Shown: positions 18,766 to 27,408 of the stretch, in pieces
How the letters are laid out: every line of letters starts with the position of its first letter
Numbering within the stretch: position 1 is the stretch's first letter
NCBI GenBank assembly: GCA_904063045.1
Contig: CAJFCJ010000022.1
Coordinates: forward strand, 434,001 to 498,000
Direction of reading: 5' to 3'
Length of the DNA: 64,000 nucleotides
DNA from: Dimorphilus gyrociliatus
Lineage: Eukaryota; Animalia; Annelida
Translations under genes and position numbers: made by a program
Notes under the pieces: generated by a model
The model's database searches: none
What the model saw: the letters and a program-made list of their open reading frames with translations, nothing else
Told to the model about the DNA's origin: nothing

Positions 18766-21040
18766 CTAATCGGCCTTTGATTGACTTAATCTTGTACTTG
18801 AATGTCGTTGACGGTGTTTCCTTTTGTCGTCCTCCTATTTAAAAGAAAATGGAAATACATATATATCCATTAATATATTAGACAAGTAAACCTATTCGTT
18901 AAAGAAAAAAATTTCAATTCTATATAAAATATAATTGTTTTCTTCAATAGTAATAGTTTAGCTAAATAGGTTACAACTAATAATAAATATACGGCTTGTC
19001 TACTTTCAACTTACCCCTTCGCAAACTCTAAAATCTTCTAGATTCTTGTACCGATTCAACCAATCCTTTAATTTTGAATCAACATTAGGTGTTCGTCTTG
19101 AATATTTCAAAAACGCCCAAAATTTTTCTAATCCATATAATTGTCCATTTTCGTAATCCCTAACAGTTTCCTCTTGAAAATCTTTGAACAAGTCAGGTCG
19201 GAACTTCTTCTCCAAGCCATAAGAATAAAAGCGGAAAAGACATTCTAGACCATAACGAAATCCGTGTTTTGCGTCCTCCACAGCTGTACATTTAAACTCC
19301 GAATACATTTTTCGATTGAAATGTTGACGGAGGAAAAACGACCAGAATCGGTAAAGGGTATTCATTTCTTGTGATTGACCATTACCAAATTTTTTACGCT
19401 CTTTAAGACATCTATATAACATTTAAATATATTAATATTCTATCAAAAGTGAACTGTTACAAAAATATTGTTTTTTTTTTTGCTTTAAATATAACGTTAT
19501 CAAACTTATGGATAACTACCTTGCTCGATATTTGTGATAGACATGCCAAACAAATCCATTTTCCTGCAGTAACTCGTGCGATGGATGCTGGAAATTTGCG
19601 TTAACCGGAGTTGAGCCATAGGAAGTCAAACCATCTTCAAGGACTGGCACCTCAGAACTAGAAGCAAATGGATGATCAGCAGCATCGATAACCCAACCGA
19701 AAGAACCTTCTTGCGGTGGATTTTCGCTATGCCTTGTCTTTCGTTTACGAGGAGAAGCAGGGTCAGGTACAGCCGTTTCCTTCATTACCGGGAAAAATCT
19801 TGGTGCTTTTTTACCATGAGGAGTACGTGGAGTTTTTTGCAACATTGACTCTGAGACTTTTATTTAAAAAAGTATCAATTAGTAAATTTAATAAGAATAT
19901 TTCTCAATGTTAAAATGTATATAGAAATTTTACCAGAAGATTCAGATTCAGCTGAAGGCGGGGGAGGTGGAATCTTTTGATGAGCAGGTGCGGCAGATTT
20001 CTGCGGATTTAATGCAGCAAAGTCTTCTGCAGAGATAACTTGAACGTTTTGAGGTGGAATACATCGTTCAAAAGTTGTAAAATCCTAGTTAAAAGGGAAA
20101 AATAGATTTTGTGTTTAATAAAACATTAGATATGTATTAAATCAACTCACCGATTTATCCCATAGATCTTGCTCATAGTAAAATAGTCCCTCATCAATAA
20201 CCTTGGCCATTTCAGATGTCATCTTTGCCCGACTGGTGTGATCTCCTGTACGGTCTCCCTGAGGGTGTCTTCGAAAGGCAGGCGGTGTTTGTGTGACAAT
20301 TAAAATTTTGCTTAAGTCGATGTCTGCTATTTCTCCATCGGAATCATCATCTGACCTATAAAGTTCATATGGTTCGTAAGAATATACAAGCGTTCAAGAA
20401 AGAATAATTAACAAACCATTCACTAAAGTTGTTCTTTCTTCCAGCCGCCGCTGAAATGTCAATCTCCTCGTCAAACATAAAATCTAATTCTTCGAGCTCC
20501 TTTCTGGACGATTTCTATAAAATAGGAATGATACAAATTATAATATACCTCTGTACCAATTAATAGCATTTCTAATAATAAAAAAACTTACAGAAATCGA
20601 TGGTTTTTTCTTTTCTTTGTGCTCACTTCTCTTTTTCCTGACTTCCTGCCATTCTAAGTCAGAGGTTGGAGCAGATACTGACAAACTAGCTTCCTGAGGA
20701 TTTTTAGTTGTCAATAGTTTATCCAATTCTGCAGAATTTTCTGAAAAAATGACCAGATAAATAATAGAATAAATGATAAGAGGTAACAAATTAAAAGCAT
20801 TAAACGACATACATAAAAAGCTTAATAACTATATTGCTTACCATTAACCAGTAAAATCATACTTTCGAGGAAAATGAAAAAAAGACGTTATATATCTGTT
20901 AGCTACGAAAGAAGAAATTTTAACTTTGAAAATTACACAACGTAACGCCATATTGCATGACGCCTTACGACGTTCGCTCAAAATAAGTAAAAAATATCGC
21001 CATTAGCGATTAGGATTTAAAGATTATATTAAAAATTCAA

Positions 21041-21078
<38 letters not shown>

Positions 21079-24000
21079 ATTCATAAATATCATTTCATAT
21101 ATATATATATACCAATAGGTGATTTACGTTATTTAGGTAAAAGCTAAAAACTGGTTTTGATAAGAAAGTAATAAGCTAAAATTATTTTTTGTCGATTTTC
21201 ATTTTCCCATTAGCGAGTATCATATAATTATTTTATTAATAGCTAGAAGGAGTTAGTTCCTCCGTATCACATAAAAAATATAATTCTATATTCTTTTTTG
21301 CAATAGTAATAACTAAAATAAACTTGATATTGTCACAGTCAAAACTTTAATTTCTCAATTACGCAACCCTTATCCTTTTGTAGGTAACTACTAATTTAGA
21401 CGCAGAAATAATAATATAGATAAAATTAAAGCCAAGTATTAGAATAGATTGATAGATGCAACCATTTAAAGAGACAAATGATATTGTTAAAAGTAAATTA
21501 AGAAGAAAATAAAACTACCTTGATTAAATCAGAAATTAAAAAGTACCTTAATTGTCCATAATTGAAAAAGCTCTTTGATATTTATATTAAAGATATTACA
21601 TAACTCATTTCTCTTTTTTTAAACTTTTCAGTGTTTCTACATCATTTTAATAGCATTTTCCTCTATGATTACAATAAATAATATCATATATCAAACACTA
21701 ACAGCACTTTGCTTAAAGACGGACTTGGGAGGAGTTAGAAAAGGGAAAGGTAAAAAAATATTAAAAAAATATCTTTTCGATCACATTTCCACGTACATCT
21801 ATAGAATTACTTTTAACGCTCTTCAAATAAATGCAGTAATAAGTTAATAAACTAAATAATAATCTGGAAATGTCAGTAAAAAGTATAATAAAAAAATAAT
21901 ATAAAACTTTCAATAAAGATGTGCTTGGTAAAAAAAAAAGGATAAAAAATACAACAGAAGATTTGCTAGATTGGAAGGCAATTTTTATTTAAACGTTATA
22001 TAAGTTTTAAGTAATTAATGAGTGACCTGAAATAACATAGATTGCAATTAAAAGTTAAAAAATGAATGACTTTCGTTCATGGCAAGGAACAATTTAGATT
22101 ATATATATTTATATATATATATATATATATGTTTCTGAAAGACAAAATTCAAAAATAACAAGCAAACCTTCTGCTAACAATAATAATCAAATTTCTCTAT
22201 ATTCCATATCACAGAAATCAGTACACATCAGAAACAAGACACTAGAATACGTCACGTGAAAATCAGTAATAGAAATTGGAATTGAATACGTTATTAAAAG
22301 TTATATTAATATATGTATATTTGTATTACGTAAGATAAATATATTCATATAACCTCTTTGATACATTCATGTCCCGCACTTAAAATTTCTTTTTAACGAT
22401 GATTAAAAAACGTAGCCAGAAAAGATGTAGATTTTATAAAAATAAACTGCTTTATGCCACAAAGTGATACACATAAAAGATTTTTAAAAAAGTCTAAGTT
22501 AAAATGCACTTTTTTCTGCAATCCAAAATGGGCCTACAATGAAACTTTCATACATAAATGCTTGTATGAACAATTTATATTCATATATGCATTTACATAT
22601 ATACTGCATATATGTATATATCAAGTATGTATATGTATGTATGTATGTATGTATGTATATATATATATAAATATATACATATATATATATATATATTGAT
22701 ATAATATTTTTTCGGTAAGTGTCTAAGTACACTTTGGTAAATTTCCCCCGATTGATTTATAAGCTTTCTCAATTCCATAAAACAAGAAATAAGTTTTGGT
22801 TAAGACCAATCTCGAACACCAATTTTAGGTATTCAAAAAAGGTTTCATTCACTAAAATTGAATATGTAGTTGGCATAGGGTTAAACGAGCAACTCAAATA
22901 TTATTGGGGCAAAGCAAATGCGGATGTGAAGAAAACTCACCGCGGATAAACGGTTTTCCAGGTACAAACTCTGGAACATTCACATTCAACTGCCCAGAAT
23001 TCTGGTTAAGACCCAATGAGGATGCTGGAGGCAGCTGAGGGGCCACTTCTGGTTCAGTCGATTCCAAAGGCCACTCAGCAGGTGATTCAATGGTTCGAAT
23101 TTTCGCTTCGTCTTCTGACAATTCTACTTTTGTACTCATTTTTAGAGCACGAGCAATCTGTCCCAAGTCCTGCGTCAGGCTTCGCATTCTATGGAAGCTT
23201 GCAATTAGACCTATATCAACCCATCCAGTTCCTGGTTCCATTTTACGGCGTATGTAGATATCCCCTTGGAGGTTCTCGGGAGACAAATAATATTCCCTGT
23301 ACCAAAGGCATGAACCGATTAACCATAAGTATTATTTACGTTACCGGGATTAAACTAAGGTACTTGTTAATATTGCCTATTGCGATATAGGTATAACTTC
23401 ATATCTAAAGTTATCCTTGCCCAGGGACAATAGGCTTATAATTTAATTGGAAAAGAAATAATACAAAAATTAACATACACTTGGTTTTTTATCAAATCCA
23501 TAACGACATTCTCATCGTTTGCTCCAGTGAAACTGTTATAGTAGACTGGTCCTGGCAAAGGTACAAAATTGTTGCCAACAGCCATGTCGACTGGTTCAGG
23601 CGTAGTTTCAAACGTAGGAGCAGAAGCGGCTTCATAAACATCAGCTGCAAAAAAAATTATACTAACTTGATAAGCCATGTTAGCTTGATAAGATAAAAAT
23701 GTTAGAACTAAAATAGGATCACATGAACATTGTTGACCCTTGGCTCTCTTAAATTTATTCTAGAACGTCTACCGAGCAAATCAGCGTAATACGATCGGCT
23801 AAGTAGTATCTAAGACAATTGTACGATAACTATAGAAGCGCTTTTCGTTGATATTCTGGTATTTTTCGTAGATAAAATGGCCCAGGACGGAAAATCAATA
23901 AGTATAATTTCTTACAATGTAGAAGTAGAAAACATTTTTTCTCACTTTGAATAATTCCTTTGTAAATAGATTTTAAAACGTTCTGAACGCGAAATTCATT

Positions 24001-26024
24001 GGTAACGATAAAACATCATCATTTATCACAGTGTAGACAGGTTGTACTACATTCAGACACTCTAAACGAAAACATTATGATAAAGTCATATTATTTTATG
24101 ATAGATACTACTCATAAGTAAATTTTCAAAGACCAAGAGCTTATAGTATTATGAGCTTTAATACCAGTTTACATTAACCTATATATACTAACAAATCATT
24201 TGTAACTAGCAATTGGTAAATTCTAATATTAATAAAAGACCAATGGTTATTATTTATATGGCAGTACCATTAGAAATAAATCTCTCTTGAACCTATACAT
24301 TATAAATGTTCAGTGTTCGGTTCATCTGCTTGCGTAAACACTCTTCTTTTGCAAATATTACAACGAAATTCTCAAGCCGAGCAATAGGTCTATAAATATA
24401 GCTTATATCGTCTTGATCTTATTTTTGCTTTTCTTATTCATTCAATATTCTTTATAAATCAACTAGAACAAGCGCTAACTCTTATGACCTAAATTTAGTT
24501 AAGTCTGCCGAACCAACAATTACACCTCAAATTACAGCTATACACTGCACAATAGAGAATAGATTTTATCGGATTTAAATAGTAACAAATATTTCAATCT
24601 AGTACTGCACCAAAACGATGTGATTGGGTCATTAGCTAGTTGCTAACCACGTTTACTATAACCAACAGATTTTTAGTGATTAGAGTTCAAATTTTTATGA
24701 TTAGCTATAAATATAATAAAAACAAAGTAGAATGATTTAGTTTTCATATACTTACAAGCACTGGCAGGTCGATTAAATCTCGAATTTCCGCGTCCTCCTG
24801 CACTGCCTCTTCCTCTTAACCCCCTACCGAATCCTCTACCTCGCCAATTTGAACTCCACTGACCTCTTCTTCCGCCTCTGCCTCTGCCATTGGCGCCTGG
24901 CGAATTCTCTCGACTTCGACTACGTCTGGAATATCTTTCCTTCTTGGGTAATTCTATTTCTAGCTGCTTCCATTTTTGCTTTGAGCTTGATTTCTTTCTT
25001 ACGGAATTATCTTCTGAACCGCCGTTTTTGTTTTCCTTCGACGAATCATCAGTACTGTCGCCGTTTGAAGCTTCCTTCTTGTCTTTTGTTTCGACAACGT
25101 CAAGAAGGGACGGCCAATTTTCCGTGTCATTTATTGCCTTCTTCTCAGGAGTAGGCACTTTGCCTTTCTCCTCGACTTTTTTCTCAGGTTTTATAACTTG
25201 TTCCTCTGTAAAGAAGAATAATAATTGTAATCAAGTTCTTTTCACTGATACGAAGATTGCTTGATGTACGTTATTTAGACCTATTTAAGAGAATAGTAAG
25301 AAAATGTCTAGATACTCTTTTTAACCAATTAAAAAAAATTATGTACGAGATAATAATATTAGTACATTTAATTGAAAAAAAACTAGATCAACCATTTGGA
25401 CAAAGCTAGATTCTTGTTTCTTTAACAAATTTTCATTTTCAAAGATAGAATAGAAAGAAAAATGGGTCGTGTTGACCTTGGACTTTAATCGATGTTCGCT
25501 ATTAAAATTGGCCAGTTTTTTATTCTAATGACGATTCTGTTCAATTGCTATTAATATTTCAATTGAAACAATAGACTGCGAAAATATACTTTGTCGATAA
25601 TCAAGAACTTTTTTTAACAAAAATTCTCTCAGTTCTAAAAATTAATGGGAATATCTAAAGCAAATTTTTTCGGAAGTACGTTAATTATTATTACACAAAT
25701 TGAATGTTGAAAAAATAGAAGATGGTATTGATAAGGCTGAAAATTTCACAGGTGTTGCCACGTGCAAACTAATACAATCAAGTGACTTATATCCACCTCG
25801 ATGCAACAGGAATTGTATCCTTCAAATACAATTAATCTACGATACAAACCTGTTGAATTATTGGAGTTAACTTTCCTCCACGGATTAGTTTTCGGTATTG
25901 GAGCTTCGACATATTGCTTACTATTTTCCAAAGAATTTTGCTTACGCAAGTCGCTTTGAGCATCTTCCAATTCAACGTCCTTCGATGCAACTGGATTTGG
26001 GGGTACCTCAGCGGCAGTCGCCAT
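18766..26024 (-). CDS. LARP1: La-related protein 1 (La motif, PAM2, DM15 cap/TOP-binding domain)
   Basis: La motif '[24 protein letters not shown]...IASFHRM', PAM2 '[11 protein letters not shown]', '[18 protein letters not shown]', DM15 '[16 protein letters not shown]...[14 protein letters not shown]...[12 protein letters not shown]'. Terminal exon 18834-18766 ends in TAG. Confidence 0.96.
22612..22696. repeat. Compound (TATG)n/(TA)n microsatellite in a LARP1 intron
   Basis: Visible; it generates the spurious IYIY ORFs in the ORF track. Confidence 0.9.
23295..23437 (-). ncRNA. Box H/ACA snoRNA in a LARP1 intron, predicted to guide pseudouridylation of 28S rRNA at the site equivalent to yeast 25S U2314
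   Basis: Hairpin 1 (GCCUAUUG/CAAUAGGC; AUAACUU/AAGUUAU), H box AUAUUA (23373-23368), hairpin 2, ACA (23300-23298) plus 3 nt. Pocket-2 arms UUCAUGC and UUAAUC pair with conserved 28S GCAUGAA-U-G-GAUUAA, with 14 nt from pocket to ACA. Confidence 0.78.
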
Positions 26025-27408
26025 AATGTTGCTTTAAAAGCTGAAGTTAAAAAAAGAATAAATTAGCTGAGTTGAATAATGTTAAAAATAGTTTTCTTAA
26101 AAAAAGATTAAAATTAAACAATATAGGTATATATTAATAAACAGTCATAACCCAAGCATTTTTATGAACAAAAAATATATTGAACAAGTTTAACACAACA
26201 GAAGGTAATACCGTTGAATTGCCAATTTATTCATATCAGTAATATACACTATTACCTTCCGACTATATACATAAACGAAACAAAAAGAATCGATAAAATA
26301 TTAATTTAACCATTTGAAAGTCGCCAAAATATTTCTATAATTGAAAAAAAAATTCAATGAAAAAAATAAATTAAAGCATCAGACTTATCGTCTTCAATTC
26401 TCGTCTGCTACGTTAACAGTTTTTGTACTGTCTAAAATAGAGCCAACTCATGTCTGGTCCGTGTAACCTTCAATGACCGTTACTGTCACAAAACCGAATA
26501 GTTTACCTCGATTTTAACTGTCTCTACGTTAAAACTGATCTTTAAGTTATTTTTAGTCAGTTTCAGCTCTAAAAGAACGCGAATGTTAAAACACGTTTTT
26601 TTGACAACCCGACCACCACGTCCTTGTTCCAGCTGTTTCGATTAAATTCATTCATTTCCAACAAAAATTTCATCTCCACAAACGCCATTACTGCCACGCT
26701 CTTGAAACAATGTCAAAAAAGGTAAAAGAAGGTCTTGCAAAACCACAAAGTCGATTTTTTAGGGCATGCTTCTTATATCACCAATTCTTCCTAAAAACTT
26801 GCAATTTTTGACAAAAGAGGTCATAAATATCGAATACAATATTAATTCTTAGTAAAAGTTGATAAAAAATGGGTTATAGCGACAAAAAATGAAATTTGAA
26901 GTAACACGTGCTTCACCAAAGGGAACATGACAACAAACACGTCGTCACTCCTTGAAAACTCACTTTTTCTCACGAAAACGTACAGCAAACAACAGCCAAA
27001 CTGGATTATAAATATTCAGATATGTTTTTGTCTATGTAAATAATAGCTTCTGCACCCTATTTTGGCCTTTTTTAGGCTGAAAATTGGGAAAATACGCAGT
27101 TTCTCCTTCAATAATCCATAGTGGCCATTTTCTTAAAGCGTGAGTGCGCATGTGTGGAATCGGAAACGAGACCGCCACAGTTTTCCGGTTCTGATATACT
27201 TTACCATTTTCTTCCGACCAGTTGTGTATTTCCCGCTAAAAATTGATTTTATTAAGTATAATATACATTTCCTATTTTTATTTTTAAATTCGCAAAAATT
27301 TTAAAACATTGGGTAAAATATCTAAAATATGAAATAAAATAAAGTCTGTAATAAAATCGGCCAAATAGTTAACGATTGGTCTATTTATAAACTACTCTTT
27401 GGGCGATA
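26025..27408. promoter_or_regulatory. Divergent (head-to-head) LARP1/GEN1 promoter and 5'UTR region
   Basis: Start codons face away 1.4 kb apart; locally CpG-richer; NRF1-like TGCGCATGTG near 27145. Confidence 0.5.

Follow-up and report, generated by a model that had tools for sequence, protein, structure and literature searches.

H/ACA RNAs, telomerase RNA included, are taught to end three bases past the ACA box, and an ACA followed by three nucleotides is the rule for the characterised eukaryotic members of the class. The usual view is that exonucleases halting at the footprint of dyskerin define their 3′ end, and the RNP, whose assembly is co-transcriptional, is thought to form on the nascent intron before splicing. 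Mammals also contain RNAs bounded by a snoRNA end on one side and an intron end on the other, the snotrons found by NAP-seq, which are favoured when little distance separates the snoRNA from the 3′ splice site (PMC10948791), and snoRNAs borne on lariats are inactive as guides and need debranching (PMC8609340). For Candida, the authors who predicted an overlap between an ACA box and an acceptor set it aside as an over-prediction (PMC5033589), and snoRNAs that overlap exons are considered in a review to be annotation artefacts in all probability (PMC11028025). In the open-access literature we found no report of an acceptor that overlaps a functional ACA box, and no literature linking Dimorphilus to snoRNA work was found.

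The window analysed here, a stretch of 64,000 nucleotides from Dimorphilus gyrociliatus, contains a 182-nt intron for which an earlier note, made from the letters alone, had proposed such an overlap. Our analysis confirms, at the level of sequence comparison, the prediction that this intron of a LARP1-like gene holds a real and conserved H/ACA snoRNA, and transcript contigs place the splice acceptor actually used on two of the three bases of its ACA box.

The LARP1 intron and its acceptor

Protein searches for LARP1 were run one exon at a time, and the La domain (PF05383, 60.8 bits) was found in the exon downstream of the intron, whereas the LARP1_HEAT/DM15 domain (PF21071, 214.6 bits) was found in the exon at 19012-19422. 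The host gene is LARP1-like, with both the La motif and the C-terminal DM15/LARP1_HEAT region present. The parts of the gene that concern the acceptor are as follows.

23479..23644, minus strand: LARP1 upstream exon, ending ...IKNQ plus the GT of a Val codon (contig joints, translation)
23297..23478, minus strand: intron of 182 nt, phase 2, GTATGT...ACAG (sequence, joint in four runs)
22941..23296, minus strand: LARP1 downstream exon with the La domain (contigs, domain search)
23297..23298, minus strand: acceptor AG in actual use (RNA joints, reading-frame test)

On the minus strand the donor side reads ...AAA AAC CAA GT to position 23479, and the intron starts with GTATGT at 23478; the 3′ end of the intron at 23297 is ...CCTTTGGTACAG, after which the exon continues with G GAA TAT TAT TTG TCT CCC GAG AAC CTC. 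Logan contigs of four public runs were placed on 22760-26080, namely a coral metatranscriptome (X1), a marine metatranscriptome (X2), a run with a relative about 93% identical in exons (X3) and a deep run of unrecorded type (X8). The joint 23295/23478 ('skips 182, CT..AC, cut +1') is present in the contigs of all four, which connect 23479 directly to 23296, and no second joint was found for this pair of exons. The intron between IKNQ-V and EYYLSPENL is spliced exactly as the earlier note had predicted. The same contigs fix the borders of the neighbouring LARP1 introns (25849..25206, 24755..23645) and place the donor that follows at 22941/22940. When a local script joined the exons at each AG between −138 and +86 relative to the acceptor, the reading frame was preserved with the AG at 23297 alone, in agreement with the claim that no in-frame alternative acceptor lies nearby.

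The ACA box (23300-23298) and the acceptor AG (23298-23297) overlap, the C and A of the box being the C and A of the CAG acceptor, and it is exactly this acceptor, as had been proposed, that the RNA joints use. From an ACA at these positions an ACA+3 end would fall at 23295, so that the extension of 2 nt into the exon described earlier follows from the coordinates. Over its final 58 nt the intron is free of AG (AG-free zone 23354-23299). The other introns of the gene end in clean pyrimidine runs (TTCTTCTTTACAG, TTTTTTTTGCAG and CATTTTTTCAG), whereas the 182-nt intron ends in GCCTTTGGTACAG, and its acceptor context, GCCUUUGGUACAG, is weaker than those of the gene's remaining introns.

Neither retention of the 182-nt intron nor an alternative acceptor, both of which the earlier note had left to RNA data, was seen in the contigs of the four runs, including the deepest (X8), in which the neighbouring 1111-nt intron has a depth of about 25 against about 1800 in the exons (about 1.4%) and the 182-nt intron a depth of 0. 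RNA from inside the 182-nt intron was found in none of the four runs. A gap in coverage of Logan contigs proves nothing in itself, and such libraries would not capture the snoRNA; the zero depth speaks weakly against appreciable retention.

The contigs also show other features of the gene. One X8 contig (window 22760-22970) reads through the donor 22941/22940 into the next intron at a depth of about 310, compared with about 1830 for the spliced form, and its reading frame meets a stop at about 22894; the contig may represent an isoform, short or with a retained intron, that ends directly behind the La module. X8 further contains low-depth joints inside two LARP1 introns, at window 24205-24268 and 25675-25752; one joint skips 62 nt (CT..AC, host strand) and the other 76 nt (GT..AG, plus strand, opposite LARP1), and possible explanations are nested splicing, antisense splicing and indel alleles. 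LARP1 transcript contigs run past 26040 with letters absent from the stretch examined (22760-26080), indicating at least one more 5′ exon (a 5′ UTR intron) upstream.

The predicted H/ACA snoRNA and its targets

The predicted snoRNA has the following parts.

23298..23437, minus strand: predicted H/ACA snoRNA (two-hairpin fold, H and ACA boxes)
23438..23478, minus strand: 41-nt 5′ intron leader, comprising the 5′ splice site and a poorly conserved spacer, predicted to be trimmed (31/48 identical to the relative L001 in a gapped alignment)
23375..23435, minus strand: 5′ hairpin with lower stem GCCUAUUG/CAAUAGGC (fold, covariance model, compensatory change in L001)
23427-23418 and 23388-23383, minus strand: predicted strands of pocket 1, UCCCUGGGCA and AUAUCG, within the 5′ hairpin
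23368..23373, minus strand: H box AUAUUA, fitting ANANNA (kept in L001 and in the relative L009; AUAUGA in L010)
23301..23361, minus strand: 3′ hairpin with lower stem ACCUUAG/CUUUGGU, including two U-U mismatches (fold, target scan, covariance model)
23354-23348 and 23314-23308, minus strand: predicted strands of pocket 2, UUUAAUC and UUCAUGC, within the 3′ hairpin
23298..23300, minus strand: ACA box, 14 nt past the top of pocket 2 (sequence, RNA joint, L001)

The stretch 23437..23295 folds into two hairpins, each with an internal loop (z = −2.69), and one of 200 shuffled sequences was equally stable. The distance from the top of pocket 2 to the ACA box, UUCAUGCCUUUGGU, is 14 nt, within the 14-16 nt rule, and a single copy of the pocket-2 pattern TTAATC..TTCATGC..ACA is present in the 64-kb window, where chance would give 0.01. 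Rfam returned no match in the window at gathering thresholds; with permissive E-values the only H/ACA family matched was ceN84, weakly, and the other permissive matches (U6, C/D and miRNA models, E 0.4-4) were set aside as noise. The Rfam scan proposed in the earlier note was in this way blank at family thresholds and yielded, below them, a weak alignment to ceN84 over its full length.

Relatives of the locus were sought by matching the La exon peptide, which gave three ORF fragments in Logan assemblies whose contigs were then retrieved. In one relative (L001, 85% amino-acid identity) an intron of 189 nt lies at the identical place, and its last 141 nt align to those of the window without gaps at 124 identical positions (88%), whereas the exon next to it reaches 52-60% identity at third codon positions. 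The 17 differences leave the H box, the ACA box and the guide strands untouched, and one of the changes in lower stem 1 is a compensatory swap from U-A to A-U. The 3′ end, ...GGTACAG|GGAATATTA, is identical in L001 and the window, so that the overlap of ACA box and acceptor, as read from the two sequences, is common to at least two species. In more distant sequences (L002-L005, 52-55% identity) an intron of about 240 nt occupies the same codon and phase, and no snoRNA was found in it by pattern search, by Rfam or by a covariance model; either the intron predates the snoRNA or the snoRNA was lost in those lineages.

A metagenome scan with both strands of pocket 2 gave six matches. Two of them, on JAAUYA01 contigs (L009:1933-2080 and L010:832-978), are homologous two-hairpin, dual-guide H/ACA RNAs in an intron of a Ran GTPase gene, situated between ...HRKKNLQ and YYDISAKSNYNFEKPF..., with ordinary intron sequence of 40 nt or more behind the ACA box; small differences between the copies (H box AUAUUA in L009 and AUAUGA in L010) mark them as alleles or paralogues. 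The other four (L006-L008 and L011) were rejected as chance pattern matches, being unrecognised by the covariance model. This model, built from the window and L001 only, finds L009 (26.7 bits) and L010 (25.5 bits) at full length with E of about 1e-4, and nothing else in 125 kb. The arrangement of hairpin, hinge, hairpin and tail, with its pockets, is present in all four sequences, the spacing from pocket 2 to the ACA box is identical in L009 and L010, and the guide strands are invariant in all four. L009 and L010 were picked by 21 bases of the guide strands, a selection in which neither hairpin 1 nor the H box nor the stems took part.

In the model-guided alignment 92.4% of cells are paired and 11 of 32 pairs are changed on both sides, compared with 25-51% paired and at most three double-changed pairs in slid controls; the stems covary, on the basis of four sequences from two clades and an alignment fitted to the model. 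The model-guided alignment was used in place of a plain MAFFT alignment of the four sequences, in which hairpin 1 is misaligned between clades, GGGCA is able to pair with UGCC, and RNAalifold gave a spurious long-range structure that was discarded. The fold statistics, boxes, conservation and covariation together bear out the earlier proposal that a two-hairpin H/ACA fold nearly fills the intron.

For the targets, every U in one complete LSU, one partial LSU and one SSU rRNA was scanned. Pocket 2 is predicted to pair with LSU rRNA over 7+6 bp (13 bp), leaving the U and the following G unpaired, while the next best site reaches 7 bp, and the site is the unique best one in two real eukaryotic LSU rRNAs. 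The predicted 28S target sequence is GCAUGAAUGGAUUAA, and this complementarity supports the U equivalent to yeast 25S U2314 as the predicted target of pocket 2. From the pairing with GCAUGAA(U)GGAUUAA described earlier, the U2314 equivalence and the 14-nt spacing stand, and the duplex is 7+6 bp rather than 7+7. Human 28S reads GGAUGAA where the guide in the window expects GGAUUAA. The yeast 25S numbering of this site and of the second one considered below was derived from the 25S sequence. A modification table served as a cross-check on the numbering (Cm2197, Am2220, Am2256, Ψ2258/2260/2264/2266, m5C2278 and Gm2288) and assigns Ψ2314 to snR86 and Ψ2191 to snR32 (PMC5699541). The guides named in the earlier note agree with the literature, being snR86 for U2314 (PMC5699541) and SNORA48 for human 28S-3797 (PMC6466398); from our numbering offset, human 28S-3797 would be yeast 2314.

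Pocket 1 is less regular. In L009 it can form 5+5 bp at the U2191 equivalent, whereas in the window and L001 the 7-nt strand CUGGGCA is kept, giving 7 bp on one side, and the other strand is AUAUCG, compared with AAUCC in ceN84 and AAUCA in L009. Owing to the extra U in AUAUCG, no canonical site for pocket 1 of the window and L001 was found in the LSU, partial LSU and SSU rRNAs scanned. Pocket 1 resembles a U2191 guide in non-canonical form, and may work with a bulge or be decaying.

The 19-mer GCATGAATGGATTAACGAG occurs in many rDNA contigs that contaminate prokaryote assemblies; when Rfam was applied to three such loci, two (L031 and L074) were eukaryotic LSU rRNA. In most matches UGCCCAG lies 114 nt upstream of the 19-mer, a spacing that fits the 123 nt between yeast U2191 and U2314. 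Presence of the target in the host 28S is indicated indirectly, by the invariant guide strands and by a probable annelid 28S fragment (L045, 4660-4868) that carries it. This fragment is binned with an endosymbiont of the tubeworm Escarpia laminata, and the target follows directly after an apparent R2-type 28S insertion site. L045 ends in 28S from ...TAGCCAAATGCC, preceded by AT-rich non-rRNA sequence; it looks like host rDNA caught at its 3′ junction with an R2-type insertion, and hence like host contamination of the bin.

The same search gave several observations on databases. Several actinomycete 'NPDC' assemblies (Streptomyces, Nonomuraea and Actinosynnema; L031, L038, L053, L070, L084 and L086) each hold a contig of exactly 7682 nt, which in L031 carries eukaryotic 18S, 5.8S and 28S rRNA, and these contigs look like a shared eukaryotic contaminant. 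Many further 'prokaryote' records also match the 28S 19-mer. The exact 19-mer GCATGAATGGATTAACGAG is found as well in large contigs or chromosomes of Methanomicrobiaceae and haloarchaea (L012, L036, L052, L073 and others); these copies presumably lie in 23S rRNA, in which case conservation of the target site would not be confined to eukaryotes. A scan of viral contigs for the 28S target found none.

Branch point and formation of the 3′ end

The 58-nt stretch without AG before the acceptor implies a branch point within hairpin 2 of the snoRNA, and the earlier suggestion of a branch point within the snoRNA is upheld as a prediction. The leading candidate is the following.

23325..23330, minus strand: branch-point candidate ACUUAU, with its A at 23326, in the apical part of the 3′ hairpin (AG-free zone, conservation)

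The A at 23326 is 29 nt before the last G of the intron, and further candidates fitting yUnAy have their A at 23319 and 23311. ACUUAU is kept in L001, and the loop bases on either side of it vary. The two U-U mismatches that set lower stem 2 of the window apart from that of L009 raise the pyrimidine content of the stem's 3′ strand.

On balance it seems probable that the snoRNA is freed by the ordinary route from the spliced and debranched LARP1 intron, with a 3′ end made by splicing, a 3′ pocket directed at the U2314 equivalent and a 5′ pocket that would descend from a guide for the U2191-equivalent site. A 5′ exonuclease would remove the 41-nt leader, and the second splicing step would leave ...GGUACAG-OH, so that no trimming at the 3′ end would be needed; the mature end would be ACA+1, to which one or two untemplated bases might afterwards be joined. 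The branch point would lie in the 3′ hairpin, most likely at the conserved ACUUAU near its tip, and the 3′ strand of the pocket together with the lower stem (UUCAUGCCUUUGGU) would double as a weak pyrimidine tract. With branch point and pyrimidine tract both in the 3′ hairpin, the core proteins would complete assembly there only after branching and debranching. The snoRNA is packed so tightly that its ACA box joins the splice site, which suggests that splicing may cut its end. The more specific proposal, that the second step of splicing itself makes a functional, mature ACAG-OH end, with the branch inside the 3′ hairpin and RNP assembly after splicing, is tentative, and we would give it a little under an even chance; if it is right, the ACA+3 tail is dispensable and a mirtron-like route for a snoRNA has been kept in at least two species.

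Counted in favour of release from the spliced intron are the junction in four runs, the single AG that preserves the ORF, the L001 orthologue, the covariation and the unique 13-bp target. Against it, the predicted ACA+1 end departs from the ACA+3 rule, co-transcriptional assembly would mask the branch point and the AG, and the acceptor context GCCUUUGGUACAG is weak.

In a competing scheme the snoRNA is cut from unspliced LARP1 pre-mRNA, the nascent RNP hides the branch point and the AG, and exonucleases trim to ACAGGG, so that each snoRNA would cost one LARP1 mRNA and the two outputs would be mutually exclusive. An ACA+3 end that extends 2 nt into the exon, a branch point and acceptor within the RNP-bound sequence and a weak pyrimidine tract would all suit such competition, and yeast is known to process intronic snoRNAs without splicing (cited in PMC5033589). 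Nevertheless, the 182-nt intron is retained in none of the contigs of the four runs, although the deepest run covers a neighbouring intron; competition precursors would be without poly(A), which makes this absence weak evidence against them. Since the Val-Glu codons dictate the exonic GG in any case, its conservation is informative for neither side. Taken together, competition appears unlikely.

Still less probable, and to be regarded as improbable, is that, whichever of the two pathways operates, the overlap was selected so that snoRNP supply tunes LARP1 and thereby links ribosome modification to the control of TOP mRNAs. LARP1 controls TOP mRNAs, and this biology, like the maintenance of the overlap in two species, would fit such a coupling; however, the more distant relatives share the intron without the snoRNA, the homologous snoRNA of another animal lies in a Ran intron and SNORA48 lies in EIF4A1 (PMC6466398). 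With Ran and EIF4A1 as hosts, the host gene looks interchangeable and its choice opportunistic. The earlier idea of a link between LARP1 output and ribosome biogenesis found no support, the hosts being interchangeable and the deepest run without retention of the intron, and it stays speculation.

Transcription from a promoter of its own inside the host gene, with a 3′ end independent of splicing, has precedents among nematode intronic snoRNAs, a portion of those in C. elegans being made in this way, but is very improbable here, where just 41 poorly conserved nucleotides separate the 5′ splice site from the snoRNA and the snoRNA lies on the host strand within an efficiently spliced intron. A decaying or chance structure without function, in an intron that alone matters, might be read from the missing Rfam match at gathering thresholds, the non-canonical pocket 1 and the two U-U mismatches in the lower stem of hairpin 2, but scarcely deserves credence against 88% gapless identity beside 52-60% at third codon positions, 17 of 17 differences that lie outside boxes and guide strands or are compensatory, and guide strands invariant in four sequences with covariation.

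Comparison with known systems

The layout at this locus, in which two bases of the ACA box belong to the functioning acceptor as well and the predicted branch point lies inside the snoRNA, in two species, is unusual and, in the open-access literature searched, apparently undescribed. The snoRNA itself is ordinary, a predicted guide for a well-known conserved pseudouridine; its interest is that it offers a conserved natural case with no room for a tail, and with a predicted branch point and an acceptor within the sequence that the RNP would bind. The layout bears on whether an ACA+1 end is viable, whether assembly waits for splicing, or whether snoRNA and mRNA exclude one another.

In sequence the nearest known RNA is ceN84 of Caenorhabditis (RF01655), whose full model (1-130) aligns to 23437..23295 with CUGGGCA, AAUCCC and UUCAUG at the same places, so that the LARP1-intron snoRNA and ceN84 probably guide the same two sites. 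It scores 19.1 bits (E = 1) against a gathering score of 80, and is no member of the family by the Rfam rule; its pocket 1 3′ strand also differs, AUAUCG in the window in place of AAUCC. Mirtrons, small RNA precursors whose end is set by splicing rather than by the usual nuclease, offer an analogy only, since they are another class of RNA with other machinery.

In function the counterparts are SNORA48 (ACA48), which guides 28S-3797 (PMC6466398), and snR86, which guides 25S Ψ2314 (PMC5699541, PMC2551606), and by our numbering both sites would be the U in GCAUGAA-U-GGAU. SNORA48 gave no Rfam match at E up to 10 on 23200-23560 and is related through the target only; its host is EIF4A1, and snR86, about 1 kb long, is made as an RNA in its own right. 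The stable snoRNA lariats (PMC8609340) resemble the present case in that the fate of the snoRNA depends on the branch point and on debranching, but they persist through unusual branch points and are inactive, whereas the LARP1 branch point is predicted inside the snoRNA. Snotrons (PMC10948791) likewise have a snoRNA terminus at one end, with the other within 10 nt of a splice site; in them a tail of intron remains, whereas the tail of the LARP1-intron snoRNA is minus 2 nt, and its own box is the splice site.
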